A stretch of 63,729 bases of DNA, counting the filler, from Pelomyxa schiedti (lineage: Eukaryota; Protista; Evosea), in assembly GCA_020536535.1 (NCBI GenBank). It is 11 parts of 11 records of this genome, joined end to end, with 100 filler letters (N's around TTAATTAATTAA, not from the genome) between each part and the next. Parts side by side here need not be neighbours in the genome. Positions count along the whole stretch, not along the records: positions 51,032 to 54,226 come from JAHLWZ010001803.1; 10 more parts are not named here. The stretch is one strand, 5' to 3'. The notes under the pieces are model-generated. The model saw only the letters and a list, made by a program, of their open reading frames with translations. It was not told the DNA's origin and searched no databases. Positions 1,438-54,226 of this stretch are shown here, one piece after another. Position 1 is the first letter of the stretch. Each line of letters opens with the position of its first letter. A program made the translations under genes and the position numbers.

Positions 1438-3692
1438 TCAGCCAAGTATTTTCTTGCGAATGTGCATGAGGTAAGGTGTTTTGAATGTAGTGTCACTGAG
1501 ATAGGGCAGTATTTGCTTCACGAGGTTCGCGTGGTGCTCGGGGTTGCTCACGGCGACATCGAGTGCGGTCTGCACAACAAAGTTGCCGTACTGGTCTTGC
1601 AACAGTGCCCCAAGTGCGGAAGTGCTTGCTATTTCACCAATTAGCCTCTCAAAGCAAGCCTTGTCGGCCACCTTCAAGCACTTTTTTGCATAGAATTGAG
1701 TTGATGGAAAAGAGTGTGTGTCCGGTACCTTCTCTATCACGTTGGAGCTGAATTTCTGTGTGCATAGGCGAGGAATGCTGCCATACAGGGCGCCAATGAC
1801 TCGGCTGATGTACAACGGGCAGTGAGAGAGTATGTGCTGGATCACATAGTTTCCATACTGGTCTTGAACCAGGTCAAGTTCATTGGCAATGAGAACTCGC
1901 ATTAGATCTTCCTGTTTTTTTGAATGCAAGAAAGCACTATCTGAATGGAGTCATACCAACTGTTCAGAGCTTGCATAGTCAATGCAACGGCTTACAACGG
2001 TGCAACCCACTTTATGTGTGCTGACATCCAGGCAATGGCCCTTGACAAATTCATACAAAAATTCCACTTGGGAATGACTGTATGTTTTCAAGAAGGATTG
2101 TAACAAGTAATTTCCTTTGGGATCTTTGATGAGGAGCATCATGTTCGGCTTAATCGTTTCTGTGATGAGTGAAACCTGTGTGAGTTTTTAGTGCTTTGTC
2201 GGATGGAGAATATTTTGCCAAGTACCTGCTCTTCATTGAGGAATTCCAATATTTTCTGCACACCATGGCTCCCATATGGGTTACAGGCAAAACTGACAAC
2301 ATGTGATGATATTTTGGAAACAATCATGTAACGTTGCTTTGAGCTGCAGTATTGCATCAATTTTGGTACCAAGTACTGTCCATATGGATCTGCAAAAGAA
2401 AGAGACACTGTCAGTATGCAAAATACCCAATGAAATATGAGTAAGAGGGAGGCACCAGTCATCATGTCAACAATGTGGTCATACACCTCGTTGAAAATTA
2501 TGGTTACATTTTCAGGGCAGTTATAAGACTCTTCCAATTGCTTTTGAAGGAAGCGGCAGCCGGCTTGGTATTTTGTCAAGTGGTATATTTGACCTTGCAT
2601 TTCAAAGAGAGAGGCACCGGATTTTGAATCGTCCATAGTGAATTTGCCATATTTTATTTCCTCGGAGGCTTTGGAGAGCTTTTGTTGCTTTGGGGAAGTG
2701 TTTGCTGGGGAAAGGCCCACTGGAGGCGGAGGTGGTGCAGGAGAAAGTTTCGTTGCTGTGGATAGAAACTGTTCTCGTGGAAATGGAGCCCAGGTTTCTT
2801 CCAAGGCAGAGGGTACAACTTGAATCATGACAGGTTTCTGTGATGTCTTGACGTTGCCGTTAGTATTTACAACTGTCGGCAGTGCGCTGCTAGCTGTGGT
2901 CACATTATATACCTCTGAGTCGAGAGTCTTTACCATGGTCGGGAAACTGTCACACATTACTCCATGTGCTACTTAATGATTTTATTTACCTGGGAAAGAT
3001 AATATCACTTGGTTTCCCTTGCTCAGCAGGTTTTGTGAGTTTCAATGGCAACGCAGTGGTGCCTTTTGCATGTGGCTTAAATACACTGTCAATCACATCA
3101 CTCAGTGGTCGAGGAGTGGGAAGAAAAGAGGTATTGAGAATTGCAGGGGGGGGTGCTGGTGTTGGAGGTTCTTGTAAAATTGTCAACTCTGATGCACGGT
3201 TTTGTGTGGTTGCTTGTGTGAATGTGACAGTCGTTGCAGAAGGTGATAATACAGGGGAAGGAGGCATATTAAGTGGTGGACCAGTCCAAATGTTGTGTGG
3301 TGATACAGGCGGTGAGTTAGCAATTCCTGAGAAGACATAGAATTGGTCAGATTTGTACAAATACTGAGATACATACCCAGAGAACGGGCAGTCAAGTCGC
3401 CCAGTGTCCTTGAAGGTGACAGGGCAAAAGTACTGTTGCTGCACACATCAAGCCTCTTTCCCTCAGCAGTTTCGTTCATCAACTCCTTCAGGCGCTCAAG
3501 CTCGATCGACCTCTCTTCCAAAATGAGGTCTTGCAATTGTACGACGAGATGTTCGAGACGGTCTATTTGCATGTCCTTCTCGTAAATGAGTTGTTGCTGT
3601 TGTTGAATTTGCCGCTTCAGTCCCTCCAGTGCAATCGAGTCAGATGATGAAGGCAGTGACACAGTCCGATCAGGTGATCGAATTGAATGCAT
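1438..3692 (-). CDS. Pumilio/PUF RNA-binding protein, Puf4/5 (APUM7-like) type, 8 C-terminal Puf repeats
   Basis: Spliced ORFs give eight repeats: YQAGCRFLQ, DPYGQYLVP, NPYGSHGVQ, DPKGNYLLQ, HKVGCTVVS, DQYGNYVIQ, QKFSSNVIE, DQYGNFVVQ. N-terminal coiled-coil and Pro/Ser-rich region. TGA at 1438-1440. Confidence 0.92.
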
Positions 3693-4593: not shown

Positions 4594-5699
4594 TTTGTTG
4601 TGGTTTTTGTTGTGTGGGTGATTGTGAACAACTCCATTTTTGTTTCTCAATACAAACTATCATAGATATGGTTTCACTGCCTATTTGTTCTTGGGTGCTG
4701 GAGTATGCCATATTATTTTCAAAATATAGTGGTTAACTAGTAAGGGGGAAACAGCCCGAGCCTCCTTTTTTGCATATCTTTGTTGGGAAGACCGCTTTTT
4801 CCCTTCTGCACTTGCAGTGTTTTTGAATTATGTTCCAAGTTATATGTACTTCTCATGCTACTTCATTGTAATTATATGCTGGTTGGAAAGACCTCATCCT
4901 TTCGTACTCTCTAATATGCCTTTTGGTAGGGCAGAGGTCTATCATGCAAAACTTTCCTCTAGCGGCTCAGCTGACCGCACCTATGCCGCACTACAAGTCA
5001 CACTTATTGTGCGCATTTCTCTTCATTCTAAGAAAGTGACATTAAACATGCTGTAAGGTTGCCAATGCTGTTATTTATTCCTTCCTTGTGGCCCTATTCA
5101 CCTGTTTTACCATTCTTTTTGCAATTGACCGCCCACAAAGTTCCAGTGACATGTGGTCAGGTAGCATGCCACCTCCAAGTGATATGGCGAGCTCTGATGA
5201 ACAGTGGCAGCAAAGATTACAATTGGCTCTGATTTCCGTAGAATTGCCTTTTGGAAATGCCCTCTTACCATTATTAGGGCACAATAGCACTGTACTATTT
5301 ACTTGCTGGAGGGTTTGCCCTCTATGGGGGATTGATTCTTCACAAAATTATTTCACAGCACACGCGCAGCTACCTGCGAACCTGCAGTGTCTTGCATGAC
5401 GTGCTTCCGCGAGTAATTGCCATAACACTTCTTTGCACATGTTGCTTTATATGCCGGGGGACTATTATGGTACGTATTTCATGTTTGTAAGCCAGTAACT
5501 AACATGTATTGAGTGGGTGTGCATAGATACCCCTGTATCACAGTCACTGTGGTGGTTTGACTTGGTGTACTTTACGGGTCTTGAAGTTGTGCCTCTGGCA
5601 ATGATGCTTGTTTTATTGAGAGTTCAGAATACCAGAAGTAAAACTCCCTCATTCAATTTGCCTTACTTACTCCCTTGCCAGATAAAGACCAACCATTAA
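4292..5699 (+). CDS. Multi-pass membrane protein, GPR137 / THH1-TOM1-TOM3-like
   Basis: Hydrophobic exons (SHVALAVVYVVLSAVSLAALV; LNYVPSYMYFSCYFIVIICW; WWFDLVYFTGLEVVPLAMMLVLL). The last helix matches the pattern I recall for this 7TM-like family. Confidence 0.55.
4542..4590 (+). repeat. Poly-T tract (T49) in the first intron of the membrane-protein gene
   Basis: Directly visible homopolymer. Confidence 0.95.
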
Positions 5700-5864
5700 T
5701 TGGCAAAGACAAATCTATACAAAATGTATTTAATACTAGATAACTTTTTCCCACAACTTACAACCATAATCCGTATGGTCACCACGACTGTTCTCACGGT
5801 CTCCCTGCCGGGATTCCCAGAATCCTGGTTTCCGGGAAGAACGAACCGGTTTGGTAAGTAGGCG

Positions 5865-7328
5865 ATGCGACGAGCGGCGTTTGACGACAGCGACGCGTCA
5901 GTTTTGATCGCGGCGGACGTCGGGGACGTTGGCTGGCTGCGGGCCAAGTTGGGGTCAGCCGACTGCGACGTGGCGGCGACTGTGAACAGGGCGTACAGGC
6001 ACTCGCGGTTCAACAAGTTGGTCACCCCGCTGCACGTCGCTTGTAGGTTTGTGCGTGCGCGTGTGTTTGTGTGCATCCTGCTTGCGTGCTTGCTTGTTGG
6101 CGATTTGTGGTGGTTACTCTTTTCTTGCATTTGTGGCTCATTGGGAAAGGTAGATCGGGGCACCTTGGCACTGCTGCGTACTTGATTGAGAGGGGAGCTT
6201 CCTTGGGTATCTTTTTTTTTTTTTTATTCTCGTTGACTTGCAATGGGCGACGTTTTGAAGTGACGGACACCTTCCTTTTATCTTTTTTTTTTTTTTCTTT
6301 CCTTTTTTGGGTATGTGAGAGGGGAGGGATGTGGAGAATTGGACTGCACTGTATTATGCTGCAAATAGTGGGTTAGTTGTGCCCATTTTTTATGCCTCCA
6401 CGTGGGTTTCTAACTCGCAAAAAGACACACCAACATCGTGAAAATGCTTATTGAGCGCGGCGCCAATGCCAACATTCAAGACAACTTGTTTCATCGATCT
6501 CCATTGGATGTGGCAAAATACAAACAGTTTGAGGACCTTGTGGACTTGTTGGCACCACCCGGAACGCCGCGGGGAAATTACATCCCCAGAGCCGCACAGG
6601 ACATTGAAAAGGAAGGAAACAAGCCAGTTATCCAAGGAATTCACTTCAACTTGCATTCGGATTTATTTCTTGGAAGGTTTGGTTTTTCAACCTCTCTCGA
6701 CACCCTCTCCATAAAGGTCATCATGAATTGATTTGATCACCCAGATACCGGCTCTCACCGCAGGATGTTTCCACAGTTACTGTGTTTAGAAAATCCCTGT
6801 CAGCACCAGATATAACTGTTCCTGACGCAATGGATGAGTTGATTAGCGCCAAAGTGAGCATGAGGTTTACCCACAGCAGAGAAAGACATTTGACTGAAAC
6901 CATTGCACTCCAGCAGGATGACGGCTGTGACATATTCCTCCGCTCTTTCACTCTCAGCACTTCAGAACACATTCTGATCCAACCGGCCTCATCACACCCC
7001 TCAACAACCAACACCATAGTAGTAAACTCAGGGCTGTGACAACCAGGCCAACATAATGTGGAATCAAAAAAAAAAATTCTGGTTTTTTGTTTGTTTGATT
7101 TATTTACTAGAACGGTGGTGCTTCGCACCACGTAATGGGAGCGAAGCGCGGAGAATAACTGTGCATCTAAGTCTGATTCTCAGTGATTCCCTAAGAATCA
7201 GAGATGATGGGTTCAGAAAAGCAACTGTCAGTGCATGGAGATGGACGCATGTGTGTTGGTTAAACACAATGATAGCAACCTTTAGGGACATTGTAGTGCT
7301 GACCTGGTTCTTACAACATGAATACTAA
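5865..7328 (+). CDS. Ankyrin-repeat protein
   Basis: Ankyrin motifs in successive exons: VTPLHVACR, GHLGTAAYLIERGASL, IVKMLIERGANANIQD..RSPLDVA. C-terminal exons unrecognised, so the end is approximate. Confidence 0.75.
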
Positions 7329-7354
7329 CTCCTTACAATAACTGCTGTTCACAA

Positions 7355-8250
7355 CCTCTTTAAGAGGCCCAGCCTATGCGCCTCGTTGAGGGAGAGGCAG
7401 CCTCCTGGCCGCAGGAGAGCAGCAGCGAGCTCCGCCGGTGCCGCATCGCAGGGGGAGGGGCGCCGCCCCTCCCCCTGTCCCCCTCCCACTGATGCCGGCC
7501 GCGAGCAGCGCCACATCGCAGGGGGAGGGGCTGCGCCCCTCCCCCTGACCCCCTCCCTCACAGCAACCAGTTGCAGACTACTGTCATTACAGCCAGACCC
7601 TTATGGACCGGGGATTCTCAGTCCGACACTCTTCCTCATTGAGCGCGGACACAAGTGGAACGTACCCTGTATTATGCTGACGGTGATGCACTGATTGCTG
7701 TAATGAGGCGATTCCTGGACGTCGTACGCATAGTCCACATACCACTCGCCCACTACTGTATCACAGAACGCACTATGGTAGATACGCCACAACAGGAAGT
7801 CCTCTGACGTTCATCTGCAACTGGTACACGAAACAAGCCAATTCCCAACTGGCGACGTCTGCCCCTTGGCAGTCGCAGGCGCGTACGTCTAACGTTAAGC
7901 GGCACCAAGCGTCTTGTGTCCGAGCCACAAATTCGAAAATCCCATAATCGGAAAAGGAGATACAGATACAGATCGCAGTGGCGATGCGGCAGTAGTCCCG
8001 AAGGCCACCCGCTCTATGACGACATGCAAGGCACGCCACGGACCGCCCCGCGACCTCTCCCTCGGCGGCTGTCGCAAATCGCTTTCTCCCTCAGAAAGGG
8101 CTTATGCCGCTCCAGTTTGCCCGAAAAGTTGTTTCCTTCCGAAAAAACGGAGGAAAAAATTGAATTATTTATTATTCAGCATATCCCCCCTCCCCGGACC
8201 TCTTCCCCCCTTTAGGCAGAGTGTCGCTTCGCTCCCATTACTCGCAGCCT
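7355..8250. mobile_element. CpG-rich, intron-free segment with twin GC hairpins; candidate non-autonomous element relic
   Basis: Two copies of CAGGGGGAGGGG-N5-CCCCTCCCCCTG (7449-7477, 7519-7547), a 12-bp palindrome CCTCTTAAGAGG (7355-7366), a CGCTTCGCTC motif near 8225, and no coherent long ORF. Confidence 0.35.
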
Positions 8251-8614
8251 ATAGGGAAGCTGTTTCAACTTGCCCTATTTGCGTGCATATTTTGTATTTA
8301 TTTTTGTATTTTTGTATTTTTGTGTGTGTTTTGGCTGGCTGTATTTGTGTGGTGTTGGTGTTTGGTTGTTTGTTGATGACTTGAGTGTGCTCAAAATTTG
8401 GGAGAGATTGCTGTGGTAGCCTTTCATGTACGAAGACAAGGTAAGGTGTCATGGGCCTCTTGGGCGCGTTGACGCCCCGGCGAATTTTGTGCTTTGCTGG
8501 AGTCTTCTTTGCCGGCAGATTATTGGAGTTGAACATAGTAGTAGCAGAAAGAGGCGGTGCTGCAGTTCCTGCTACTATGCCGCCCCCGCCTCTTTCTGCT
8601 ACTACTATGCTCAA
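8249..8614 (-). pseudogene. Truncated HMG-box-like gene
   Basis: RRGVNAPKRPMTPYLVFVHERLPQ matches helix 1 of an HMG box, but no helix 2/3 (..LGE.W) follows in any frame I could splice. Confidence 0.45.
8534..8609. repeat. 24-bp perfect inverted repeat with 28-nt spacer
   Basis: CATAGTAGTAGCAGAAAGAGGCGG (8534-8557) and its reverse complement (8586-8609). Confidence 0.95.
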
Positions 8615-8805
8615 TGCAATTCAGCCTACACTTACATGGAAAAGCGCCATTGGCCGTAATCGTAGTAGTCCTAAGGTGTGTTGTTGTCGTAGTCGGTTGT
8701 CACCAGAGGAGCGAGGACGGCTGTTGTGTTACCGCCGGTGGTGGTGTTGGTCGTGGTGAATGTACCATTCACTTTGACCAGAAGCCCAAGACTTTGTCCC
8801 CCTGA

Positions 8806-8881
8806 TGATCAATCTCCTGTGTCGCTTCCTCAAGTGCTCAGGCTCTGCCACACAGGAGATTGATCAGCTCATAGCTATGAG
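8806..8881. repeat. 17-bp perfect inverted repeat plus adjacent 14-bp palindrome
   Basis: TGATCAATCTCCTGTGT (8806-8822) / ACACAGGAGATTGATCA (8850-8866); CTCATAGCTATGAG (8868-8881). Confidence 0.95.
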
Positions 8882-9028
8882 TACAAATAAAATTGTGTCT
8901 TGTCTACCCCAGCACCACCAACGTCACCACTGATGCCGCCCAGTCATGCCACCTTTGCCGTGGTGCCACGACAATCAACTATCACCAGACCCAGCTGTGT
9001 ATAAAAACATTTTCACAGAACTCCGAGA

Positions 9029-9176
9029 ATGTTAGGGTGCGCCCGCGTGGACGGCGCAATCGACGCACGTGCGCAGTTCGTGGCTGTGGGCGCCGGGGTA
9101 ATTGTGGGACGGTGCGGGGCGCACAGCGCGGCGCGGATGCTGAGCCCGCAGCTGGCGTCGGACCTGGGCCGGCAGT
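9029..9176 (+). CDS. 5' fragment of an orphan-family protein (truncated by scaffold end)
   Basis: ATG at 9029, GC-rich, encodes ARAQFVAVGAGVIVGRCGAHSAARMLSPQL, a variant of the motif seen near 51500 and 53200. Confidence 0.5.
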
Positions 9177-9276
9177 NNNNNNNNNNNNNNNNNNNNNNNN
9201 NNNNNNNNNNNNNNNNNNNNTTAATTAATTAANNNNNNNNNNNNNNNNNNNNNNNNNNNNNNNNNNNNNNNNNNNN
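9177..9276. other. Artificial scaffold-join spacer
   Basis: N44-TTAATTAATTAA-N44; stops in all six frames. Confidence 0.98.
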
Positions 9277-9585
9277 CAATGGACCCAAATGATTCCACCC
9301 TATGCACCAGTTCAGACCCTTCCCTCTTCTCGCTCTCACTTGTGCCTTGTTGATGTGATGGAAATGAACTTCTAATAACAAGTCTAAGTTTTGAATGTGT
9401 TAATTTACTGGCAGCTGTCTAGACCCACACAGCATCGAACTTGTTTGGCAAGAAAGAAACAACGAAATCCTCAAAGTCCGAAAAGGCCGCAATATCTTTA
9501 TTATTGCGGCTCTGATCACCCTGAGTTCTTCCACTCTGATGCTGGGTTCACCACTTCCCTGCCTCCCGACTTTCAACGAATTCTG

Positions 9586-51031: not shown

Positions 51032-51689
51032 TCACCGCCCCGGGCAGTGCTTTTTCACAGCTTTTTGACTGGATCACCGCCCAAAAAAACGGGGCAGAGC
51101 CGTTTACAGGAACTTGATCGGGAAAAAAAATCACCGCCCATTGATCCAGATATGCTTCTTTGTCCTGAATGTAGAACTTGTTGCTTGTCTGCATCACCAA
51201 AAAGTGCTCATTGGCACCAAGCACTTTGCCAAGCCTTTTCGCCCACCACTTCATTTCATGAGTCAATGTCAGCAACAGTGGCGCCACACCAAACGTGATC
51301 ACCACATCATCTCCGGACTTAACTGTCCACATCACACAGTAGTACCTCGCATTTGCAATGATCCACGCCCACAGCACCCTCAACACCAAAGTGCTGTCAC
51401 CAGATCCACCACAACCCACCGTCATTTCCATTGGCATTGTTGATGCCATCCTCAGCACCACCAACAACAGCAGCGAACAACGCGCACCGCAGCGAGGGTG
51501 TGTGCCAACGACCAACGCCATCATCTGCTCCCTCGCTGTCCATTCCCTCGTTGTGGTTGCCTCCGTGTTATGTGACAATTGCACTGTGAGTGACAGGGGC
51601 TTCACTGTGACCACTCGGCCGATTTGTTTGTGCCTCCTCCTGGTCGCCGGTGCCGGGGTTGCTGTAGTGAGGTGGTGGCCATCGCACAC
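51032..51689 (-). CDS. Orphan protein with GTHPRCG motif (3' truncated)
   Basis: Long open frame to the scaffold edge with AREQMMALVVGTHPRCGARCSLL; true ATG uncertain. Confidence 0.55.
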
Positions 51690-51900
51690 AACTAAAATGA
51701 TGGTGATTCCTCAAACACTTTCTTCATTGAAGAGTGGAGGCCTAGCGTCGCTGGACAACAGTTACAATCAAAGGGCAGGAACACAGATAACACTGACCAA
51801 GTGTTGGTGGTCTTGTTTTGTTGTTTTTGCCTTCTTGAGTTTCAAGAACAACCTCCTCCCTGGGAGAGCGACCCACTGAATTCTGACAACTTCTTGGAAT

Positions 51901-54010
51901 TCAATGACACGTGATGCTGTGCCGTAGGTGATAAGGAAGGAGGGAACGAGACCAAGAGGAGGAACCGTTTCTCCAATAACCAGTTCCAGCCAGTTGGTCG
52001 GCCTTTGGCCACCCTCCCACAATCCTCTTCCCACAGTCTTTCCCCAGTGTGCACACCTGTAAGCAGTCAGTGTGGTAAAAGAAGATAAAATGATGAATGA
52101 AATCATTTACCAGGAGACCGTTGATGAACACAGAGTGGTCAGGCGACATTGGGCCACCTGACAGCTCAAAGTTGAACAGTTCATCGACAAACACTGTTCT
52201 CACTCTGGTGATCTCAAATGGGTGCTTCCACGTTCCGTCCTGTGGAAGTGTTGGTTGTGCAATTTTTTTTTTGTTGTTGTTTGGGGACACTTATGTACAC
52301 ACCATGAAAACGGGATGACCTGGAGTCAACCAAACACCAGCGACATTGCACATTGACAGAAGTTGGTTTACTTGTTTCTTCTCAACCTGGACCACTTTCT
52401 TGATTCCTGATTCCGTTTTGACCCAGTCCCCAATGTTGATGTCTCTCACACGTCTGTGTGTGTTGTTAGTGATTGAGGAATGGTTAAAGAGTGTACTTTT
52501 TGTGTCCACCTGCCATTGCCACAAAGCCATGGCCAGTGAAGCACTTGAGGAACTGCGGTCAATGTGTTAGTTGAGTGATACAGCCAGGTGATGACCTTTG
52601 ATTCCTCATTGTCATTCAATGTGCCAAATAAAGTTTCATGCAACCTAATGGCCATGAACCTTTCTTGTGGTGTGTGAAAGTATGCCCCACTTCTGAAAAA
52701 CGCAAAGCATTGGAGGTTCCCAACATTTCCAAGCTCTTTGTGGCATGTTCAATGTTGGAAAGAAAAAAGGGACCTGCTGATACCAACAGCGGTAACAAAG
52801 TCATCAAGAGCAACCCAGGGTCCAAAGTCATACAAAAGTGTGTATGCTGAGAGAACTATATTTTTGGTGATTAGTAAGAAAATGATAAAATTAAGTACTT
52901 GTTTAATAAATCAATGATAATGAAAGTTAGTGTATTTTTTGTCCAATTACCAGTGCAGAACGCCATTCCACTCTTATGCTCAACAGGGTTGAAGTTTCCA
53001 AATGCTAGTACCTGGAATTTATCCACTGATGTCAGCAATCGGTGCAAGGAATGCCAATAAGATTCTGTCAAGGAGGCCTCAAATTCAGTTTGCCTGGGCT
53101 CTCTCTGTAACCCATCGAGGTCAGAACAGTTGTTGAACCCCCTGCAGAGCATAAGTATGCTCACTAGGATGTCAGATCCCAGGACCAACAGTGGGCTGTC
53201 CTTCCCGGCGCGTGGATGAGCCCCACACAGAAATGCAATTGACCGTGATGCAGTTGTTTTGCACGATCCTGGTTTATGCCTAAATGAGATTAGGAAGGGA
53301 GCGAAGAAACACTCACTGAGTATCAGTTTCCAAGCGGGAGAATGTTTCATCAAAACCCGGGTTTGTTTTGGGAACCACTCCGACCATGCGTGCTTGCACG
53401 CGGCTGAAAGAAGAGCGACATCCCGACCTGAAGCCATGAGTCCCCTGGCCCACCCAACGCATTTTCTTTGCCGGAACCACTTGATCCTGCTTTCCACACA
53501 CTGAATTTCTGTTTCCTGTGAAATTGTTAATGCAGGAGGGATACTACCCAGTGCATACACATGCAGTGGGAAAAAAAAAAAAATAAAATAAAACATGCCC
53601 TAACAAGCCACTACATCCACATCGACACGTACAATCAGAGGAGGGAGCCCCGACGTGTTCGGCCTCATGCACTCTGGCTCCTCGTTATAAAGCCCAACCG
53701 TGGCGTCGTTGATCTCGGGCCTCGTCATGTGGAACCCCCTCATCGCCCCCTCCATCGCGGGGCCGTCCCCCCCCGTCAGCCCGGGCACCCGCTCCTCCGG
53801 CGCCCGCCACGCCCCGTCGGGGCCCCGCACCCCGCGGAACGGCGCGCGCTTGGTCCCGCGGTAGGGCCCCAGCAGCGACGTGTAGGAGCGCCCCTGCTCC
53901 TTGGACGTGCAGTAGGTGGCCATGCTGTGGGGGTTGGGCGCGGCCCACGGCGGCCCCCGCTCCAAGATGGCCGCGATGGCCTTTTTCCTGGCCTTGCTGC
54001 ACTCGCGCAT
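51901..54010 (-). CDS. Hint-domain (Vint-type) autoprocessing protein with uncharacterised N-terminal region
   Basis: Spliced C-terminus: ..NDNEESK|FLK-CFTGHGFVAMAGGHK|KRVRDINIGDWVKTESG..GVWLTPGHPVFM|DGTWKHP..LFNFEL..HSVFINGLL|VCTLG. The N-terminal region contains AFLCGAHPRAGKDSPLLVL. Confidence 0.82.
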
Positions 54011-54066
54011 CCGGCGCCACTCGTCCTGCTCGGCGGCGGGGGTCTCGCTGTCACACGCCTTGTGTT

Positions 54067-54226
54067 CGGTTCACTGGTTTCTTCTCGACTTTGACCACTT
54101 TCTTGATTCCCGATTCCGTTTTGACCCAGTCGCCTACGTTGATGTCACTCACACGCCTGTGCGTGTGTAGTTATTTGAAGAATGGCTGGTGAAAGAACAT
54201 ACGTTTTGTGTCCACTTGCCATTGCA
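54067..54226 (-). pseudogene. Truncated second copy of the Hint domain N-terminus
   Basis: AMASGHK|..RRVSDINVGDWVKTESGIKKVVKVEKKPVN is clearly paralogous to about 52360-52525, with an intron at the same position; it then switches abruptly to GC-rich sequence and stops. Confidence 0.85.

Follow-up and report, generated by a model that had tools for sequence, protein, structure and literature searches.

Of the three Hint lineages of eukaryotes, Vint has been studied least. Vint genes were defined by the architecture VWA-Vwaint-Vint, and intracellular processing was proposed for the encoded proteins (Bürglin 2008, PMC2362128). No other description of Vint genes was found in the literature beyond that study, and the only partner described for the domain is vWA. 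One Vint structure, from Tetrahymena thermophila, has been solved (8r2c). The present work concerns a gene of the anaerobic archamoeba Pelomyxa schiedti, hereafter the Vint gene, located on the minus strand at positions 54010-51901 of a window (the whole stretch of DNA analysed) of 63,729 nucleotides. Positions 51032-54226 of the window are the reverse complement of the entire 3,195-bp contig JAHLWZ010001803.1 (assembly GCA_020536535.1). The region is very probably one nine-exon gene of a family specific to Pelomyxa and Mastigella, the product of which joins a disordered part encoded by GC-rich DNA, an all-helical domain and a C-terminal Vint-type Hint domain that is predicted to cleave itself. 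Hint genes of Pelomyxa were not described in the literature searched, and Vint genes are not mentioned in the P. schiedti genome paper (PMC8887013).

The Vint gene product resembles the VWA-Vwaint-Vint proteins (PMC2362128; PF14623; 8r2c) in its C-terminal domain, which scores above the Vint threshold, includes Cys1 and the TxxH motif and lacks the C-terminal motifs of inteins. It also shares with them the Hint fold with a following C-terminal helical region and the lack of a signal peptide, with processing presumably intracellular. However, it has no vWA, Vwaint or U-box domain, and its Vint domain is joined to a helical domain that is restricted to Pelomyxa and Mastigella. As compared with the Pfam Vint profile, the match is limited to positions 1 to ~118 of 166, and the C-terminal LGKDCG..GWP..GTGYW defines a divergent subtype. 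The same subtype occurs in other Vint proteins of these organisms (Pelo_13499, the 'galactose oxidase' KAH3762413.1 and Mastigella P0017), in which the Hint domain is 40-55% identical, has the same C-terminal motif and lies at the extreme C-terminus. Unlike the Vint gene product, those proteins have recognisable N-terminal partners of their own, the relation of which to the helical N-domain was not significant in hhalign comparisons.

With the Hedgehog/Hog autoprocessing domain (PF01079; 1at0, 6tyy), the product shares the Hint fold, Cys1, TxxH, an extra C-terminal region and, as predicted here, cleavage at the N-terminal side only, but it falls below the PF01079 cut-off (as judged by the score of a paralog), has no secretion signal and no known link to a sterol. 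Inteins and the bacterial and ciliate BIL domains (6y75, BIL2 of the Tetrahymena BUBL locus) likewise have the Hint fold and an N-terminal Cys chemistry that would apply here as well. In contrast to these, the Vint gene encodes neither a C-extein nor a His-Asn followed by Cys/Ser/Thr, and the domain is not inserted in a host protein.

Gene model

In the public annotation, two genes are placed at the locus, Pelo_18372 and Pelo_18371. Pelo_18372 (391 amino acids (aa), 54010-52446) reads ...ESK-FLKCFTGHGFVAMA, that is, it includes the FLK preceding Cys1 together with the first 11 Hint residues (CFTGHGFVAMA), and terminates via a splice donor at ~52510 that is used by no paralog. The Pelo_18371 model (139 aa) begins at a Met within the second Hint exon (exon B), lacks Cys1 and block A, and has an extra, unsupported 3' intron that cuts out a tail conserved in the paralogs. 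A 129-aa open reading frame (ORF) spanning the last two Hint exons matched one protein, Pelo_18371, in the database search.

The gene model proposed here keeps the upstream exons of Pelo_18372, and its donor at ~52510 is replaced by the donor given in an earlier first-pass annotation of the sequence. This model has nine exons with 538 codons open, encoding a 538-aa product, and eight introns of 43-99 nt, each bounded by GT...AG. The mean number of introns per P. schiedti gene is 7.4, with genes predicted by Augustus, PASA and EVM (PMC8887013). Joining 52552-52497, 52453-52303, 52239-52111 and 52056-51901 leads from FLK-CFTGHG through TPGH to VCTLG, and exactly reproduces the intron-split Hint peptide, with Cys1 at the TGC codon 52543-52541, that the first-pass annotation had read from the DNA.

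The paralog Pelo_18870 (P0003, contig L002), which is 76% identical at the nucleotide level, has the N-terminal region and the Vint domain annotated as a single protein, with the homologous donor. Furthermore, a contig of the Logan collection (L005, from run SRR23919873) represents a transcript of the paralog Pelo_680 after splicing; in comparison with the genomic locus L007, the exon blocks show 100% identity and nine introns of 41-52 nt have been removed. The junctions after ..EEKEN, ..GDGTRK, ..GHPVFI and ..INGLL in this transcript are at the same four Hint positions as those proposed for the Vint gene, and the tail is intronless. The unspliced tail of exon 9, GYWRNGSSSWSRS.., agrees with the paralog tails (GYWRSGTSHW.., GYWRKASSNWSK..), whereas the annotated alternative does not. 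The paralogs and the paralog transcript support the Hint splice junctions of the first-pass annotation, which fit better than those of the public annotation. As judged by these alignments, the public annotation splits one gene in two via one wrong splice donor. Both the exon structure and the protein recur in the paralogs, at 60-85% identity, and such recurrence is far beyond chance.

Hint domain, helical partner and family

The Vint domain comprises ~160 aa at the C-terminus, in frame with an N-terminal region of ~378 aa. The 50 aa of exon B alone matched Pfam Vint (PF14623) with 31.9 bits (E 1.4e-7), as compared with a gathering cut-off of 27 bits, and exon C prolongs the match to profile positions 68-117. 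The paralog Pelo_18870 scored 74.6 bits against the same profile, and against Pfam Hint (PF01079) it remained below the cut-off (22.5 vs 29.7 bits). Cys379 corresponds to Cys1 and TPGH to the TxxH of block B, the C, H and P being invariant in alignment A2. All near-invariant residues of the family are retained, namely Cys1, G, the H-P of TPGH, W, two Asn, T-L-G and G.G.

The fold was assessed on the Hint domain of the paralog Pelo_15031 (P0125:357-522), which is 71% identical to that of the Vint gene and was modelled by AlphaFold2 (AF2) with a predicted local distance difference test (pLDDT) value of 94.2. The top Foldseek match of the model in the PDB was the T. thermophila Vint domain (8r2c; E 7.6e-9, TM 0.64, root-mean-square deviation 2.0 Å over 126 columns), followed by Tetrahymena BIL2, mini-inteins and Hedgehog, and the family profile matched the 8r2c sequence with E 6e-23. 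On the strength of the profile matches and the model, the C-terminal domain is a Vint-type Hint domain.

The last β-strand (..LLVC-TLG) is followed by four short helices, which are made up of the conserved LGKDCG.R...WP..D...G.GYW segment and located at 130-164 in the paralog model. The corresponding C-terminal part of the solved Tetrahymena domain has reportedly been named the adduct-recognition region and proposed to regulate cleavage. The intein-type C-terminal His-Asn and a C-extein are not present in the Vint gene product; beyond the last Hint strand this product extends for ~50 residues, with the helical tail, to the stop codon.

The N-terminal ~378 aa consist of a disordered part of ~130 aa encoded by GC-rich DNA and an all-helical domain of ~250 aa with the motif FLCGAHPRAGKxSPL. 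In an AF2 model based on a nine-member alignment, residues 1 to ~130 were disordered (pLDDT <50) and helices were predicted at ~133-377, with local pLDDT up to 89 and a mean of 55.8. Three blocks of the region are conserved: the exon 1 product (APN..SM, VM.GF.M.RP, EPEC.RP.T.GLPPL), the segment FLCGAHPRAGKxSPL..L..D.L..I, and a long block ahead of the Hint domain. L212, G214, R218 and G220 of the exon 3 motif are invariant in nine family members. There is no hydrophobic leader, and the sequence starts with the charged MRECSKARKK.

The region upstream of the Hint domain gave no Pfam match at E<=10. Specifically, vWA and Vwaint (PF14624) were not matched at E<=10 in the ORFs of the locus, P0002 or P0003, and a motif scan found no DxSxS (MIDAS) motif in the N-terminal region. 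The model of the N-domain is all-helical rather than alpha/beta, and no vWA structure was among its fold matches. As judged by the profile searches and the model, the N-terminal domain is not vWA. Searches for another relative gave a chance match only (E 1.8) with the N-domain family profile against PDB sequences, and nothing at E<=0.001 in Foldseek with the N-domain model of mean pLDDT 55.8. In an exhaustive VIA-align search the best Z was 4.7, for EF-hand/PONY-like helical arrangements, which is below the level that is meaningful for helical proteins. A degenerate F-box in the HPRAG/SPL..L..D.L..I segment was considered but was not significant, the hhalign probability against the F-box regions of Pelomyxa Vint proteins being <1%, with only SPLLVLGSDILVSILML of the N-domain aligned with the first F-box helix. 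Pfam F-box profiles (PF00646/PF12937) had no match in the locus ORFs or the paralog.

Exon 1 with its upstream flank (53615-54050) has 72-77% GC as compared with 44-50% in the remainder of the gene. The first exon is GC-rich also in the paralog on L003 (71-79% at 1450-1750), and to a lesser degree in L004 (~60%). The possibility that the 75% GC stretch comes from contaminating bacteria was rejected, as the same GC-rich exon and conserved protein are present in paralogs on other contigs. The exon 1 product is predicted to be disordered and is faster evolving (dN/dS 0.4-0.6). A longer paralog, Pelo_8821 (P0005), starts with MGQTGSK, residues that conform to the usual pattern for N-myristoylation (Gly2, Ser6).

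As revealed by phmmer and profile searches, the N-terminal region is present in at least 13 P. schiedti proteins and one Mastigella eilhardi transcript (P0011), with Vint following in all of them; the named members are Pelo_8821, 3772, 14740, 680, 17995, 16849, 9027, 17233, 15031 and 18870 and KAH3742917.1 ('Hint-domain'). The distribution of these matches makes the N-domain family Pelomyxa/Mastigella-specific. As compared with the two nearest paralogs, dN/dS was 0.33-0.39 overall, with values of 0.25-0.29 for the helical N-domain and 0.40-0.47 for the Hint domain; these values indicate that the genes are under purifying selection. On the 9.6-kb contig L003 (JAHLWZ010001289.1), two Vint genes of the same subfamily are located at 1468-3617 and 5213-9416. 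The second, whose annotated product has 1,057 aa, shows similarity to several parts of the Vint gene and may have been merged during gene prediction. From these positions, the subfamily is at least partly tandemly arranged.

To assess the wider distribution of the domain, a profile of 139 columns of P0001, to which exon B of the Vint gene contributed nothing, was used in an exhaustive search that returned 119 representatives at E<=0.001. Thirty of the 119 were looked up; 21 had a named source, and all of these were pelomyxid (15 P. schiedti, two Pelomyxa sp. JSP and four Mastigella eilhardi), the others being of metagenome or Logan origin. Among 56 database relatives scanned, Vint was found in all 56, vWA or Vwaint in three, F-box in nine, Kelch in seven, WWE in four and Ras in three. 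The architectures seen include Ras-Kelch-F-box-Vint, Kelch-F-box-Vint, F-box-like-Vint, WWE-Vint and WD40-Vint. F-box proteins usually carry the F-box N-terminal to Kelch repeats. In five P. schiedti proteins (P0019, P0020, P0024, P0025 and P0033) the order is Kelch propeller, F-box, Vint, with a Ras-like GTPase in front in two of them and the F-box 45-60 residues ahead of the Hint cysteine.

The first-pass annotation had described a Hint domain on an 'orphan' N-terminal region without a vWA MIDAS motif or a terminal His-Asn. The presence of a Vint domain with a Hint fold, the latter seen via the 71%-identical paralog, the absence of vWA and of an intein-type C-terminus, and an uncharacterised partner all held up. 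The novelty attributed to the protein did not, as this is a lineage-specific family built on a known domain: the N-terminal region, including its GC-rich part and FLCGAHPRAGK, is conserved throughout the family, and vWA-Vwaint-Vint proteins were too narrow a reference for a domain that has vWA or Vwaint beside it in only three of 56 relatives. Calling it a 'new class' of self-cleaving, self-ligating protein was overstated, given at least 13 paralogs and the solved structure 8r2c. What is new is the combination of the helical domain with Vint and not a protein class, the domain, fold and likely chemistry being already known.

Predicted processing and its alternatives

The analysis itself supplies the gene model, the family, the conserved residues and, via the paralog, the Hint fold; from these, and by analogy with characterised Hint domains, we infer cleavage, its nucleophile and a biological role. 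Cys379 would attack the carbonyl of Lys378 in an N-to-S acyl shift, aided by Thr437 and His440 of TPGH, to give a thioester. The latter would be resolved by water or by a nucleophile recruited or positioned by the C-terminal helical region, and an N-terminal fragment of ~378 aa would be released, free or with an adduct. As there is no signal peptide, the processing site would be the cytosol. Protein splicing is not expected from the sequence, because neither a C-extein nor a His-Asn is present.

Several points weigh against this interpretation. In the literature searched, no biochemical demonstration that a protein of this Vint subfamily is cleaved was found, and the evidence for the fold comes from a 71%-identical paralog as a proxy rather than from the gene's own spliced Hint. 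Position +5 of the Hint domain is His, whereas the relatives have mostly Asp/Glu, with Asn, Ser and Gly also seen. A transcript or protein of this exact copy was not found, the database matches being genome-derived predictions only. Finally, the gene lies on a short contig with a foreign Hint fragment at the 5' end, and the promoter and true start are therefore not covered.

A different outcome of the same chemistry, which is possible though tentative, is that the Vint domain transfers the N-terminal domain onto a lipid, a small molecule or a protein amine, in the manner of Hedgehog with cholesterol; the 'self-ligating' behaviour suggested previously corresponds to this outcome. The C-terminal helical region (LGKDCG.R...WP..D...G.GYW), which follows the last Hint strand, is strongly conserved. 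This conservation would be consistent with such a transfer, as would the location of the region, since the sterol-recognition region of Hedgehog occupies the equivalent place. Intracellular processing, as proposed for Vint proteins (Bürglin 2008, PMC2362128), also fits. On the other side, no adduct, binding partner or ligand is known, the sequence points to no nucleophile, and hydrolysis is the default fate of an unresolved thioester.

It is a speculative and rather improbable extension that Vint serves in Pelomyxidae as a general C-terminal module on dozens of proteins, providing thioester-based regulated release or covalent attachment without E1/E2. If true, this would be an intracellular, lineage-specific counterpart of Hedgehog lipidation, in which the C-terminal helical region selects the nucleophile, and the partners of the module would include the orphan helical domain, Kelch/F-box substrate receptors, Ras-like GTPases, WWE proteins and WD40 proteins. 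In two genera of Archamoebae, one Vint subtype has expanded greatly and is fused to numerous partners that are unrelated to one another. These N-terminal "cargo" domains form a natural panel for asking what purpose Vint cleavage serves and whether transfer of an adduct takes place.

It is unlikely, but deserves consideration, that this copy is a dead or artefactual paralog, i.e. an unexpressed duplicated or rearranged fragment or an amplification chimera, the function being retained in paralogs on long contigs. The P. schiedti genome was assembled from phi29-amplified single cells (PMC8887013), and in its first 165 nt (54226-54062) the contig has the end of a paralog Hint exon A, an intron and the initial two thirds of exon B. 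This fragment, which was also recovered by the repeat search as repeat families D1 and D2, stops mid-exon after ...GTGAACCGAACA and runs directly into the 5' region of the gene. Since the DNA was amplified before sequencing, the junction at ~54062 is probably a whole-genome-amplification or assembly chimera, although it may instead reflect a genuine rearrangement within a tandem array. The 99.4% identity of the fragment to the paralog, the failure to find a transcript-derived protein of this copy and the unusual His at +5 point in the same direction. However, nine exons are open over 538 codons with all introns GT-AG and all near-invariant family residues kept, dN/dS against the nearest paralogs is 0.25-0.40, and homology to the paralog on L003 extends over the full length of the gene and past the ATG into the 5' region. 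These features argue for an intact gene rather than a dead copy.

The N-terminus and start codon of the Vint gene product are uncertain, because the 5' end of the contig is the junction with the foreign Hint fragment, because the frame is open upstream of the first in-frame ATG (54010) to the junction (to ~54070), and because the longer paralogs have 60-110 extra N-terminal residues in the alignment.

That Pelo_18372, without a Hint domain, and Pelo_18371, as a Vint fragment of 139 aa, are two separate genes is scarcely credible in spite of the Augustus, PASA and EVM annotation, because the former (391 aa) already includes 11 Hint residues and uses a donor (~52510) found in no paralog, the latter lacks Cys1 and block A and loses the paralog-conserved tail to its C-terminal intron, and the paralogs and the spliced transcript have both parts in one frame. 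The split P. schiedti gene model is corrected here, and the probable chimeric contig end is flagged.

Feature coordinates and neighbouring sequence

Table 1. Exons of the P. schiedti Vint gene and the adjoining Hint fragment, in window positions.
Feature	Positions	Strand	Basis or remark
Exon 1, 132 codons, 72-77% GC	53615..54010	-	Equals residues 1-132 of Pelo_18372; conserved in P0005, P0008, P0007
Exon 2, start of helical N-domain (ETEIQCVE..RIKW..R..C..WAR)	53317..53515	-	Conserved block in alignment A3; pLDDT 66-89
Exon 3, family motif FLCGAHPRAGKDSPL; His216 codon 53218-53216	52951..53268	-	Family alignment
Exon 4 (VLSAYTLLYDFGPWVALDDFVTAV)	52784..52855	-	Spliced reading frame
Exon 5, conserved pre-Hint block (E.GNVGNL.C.AF..SGAY.HTPQERFMAIRL.ETLFG..ESK)	52596..52735	-	Family alignment
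Exon 6 (Hint exon A), FLK, Cys379 (codon 52543-52541), predicted scissile Lys378-Cys379, block A	52497..52552	-	C invariant in A2; homologous introns spliced in paralog transcript
Exon 7 (Hint exon B), TPGH block B, Thr437 52326-52324, His440 52317-52315	52303..52453	-	Pfam Vint; H, P invariant in A2
Exon 8 (Hint exon C), DGTWKHPF..LFNFELSGGP..DHSVFINGLL	52111..52239	-	Vint profile positions 68-117; paralog alignment
Exon 9 (Hint exon D), VCTLGKDCGKRIVGGWPKAD..GTGYW, tail, TGA stop (51903-51901)	51901..52056	-	Last Hint strand and C-terminal helical region
Paralog Hint fragment, outside the gene	54062..54226	-	99.4% identity to L002:1245-1409

At the boundary of exon 3 and intron 3 (AFCT|gtaattggacaaaaaatacactaac), 39 nt (52918-52956) are 64% identical to the boundary of Hint exon A and its intron (repeat family D2). 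This likeness may be due to chance or represent a decayed remnant.

Downstream of the Vint gene, the minus strand has an unannotated open frame at 51033-51710, with a length of 226 codons, that is cut off by the end of the contig. It includes the motif ALVVGTHPRCG, and its HPRxG resembles that in FLCGAHPRAG of the N-domain of the Vint gene. An ORF adjoining the paralog on L003 (5075-4701, opposite strand), with the motif ALLMTTHPRCG, is 26% identical to this frame (E 2e-5).

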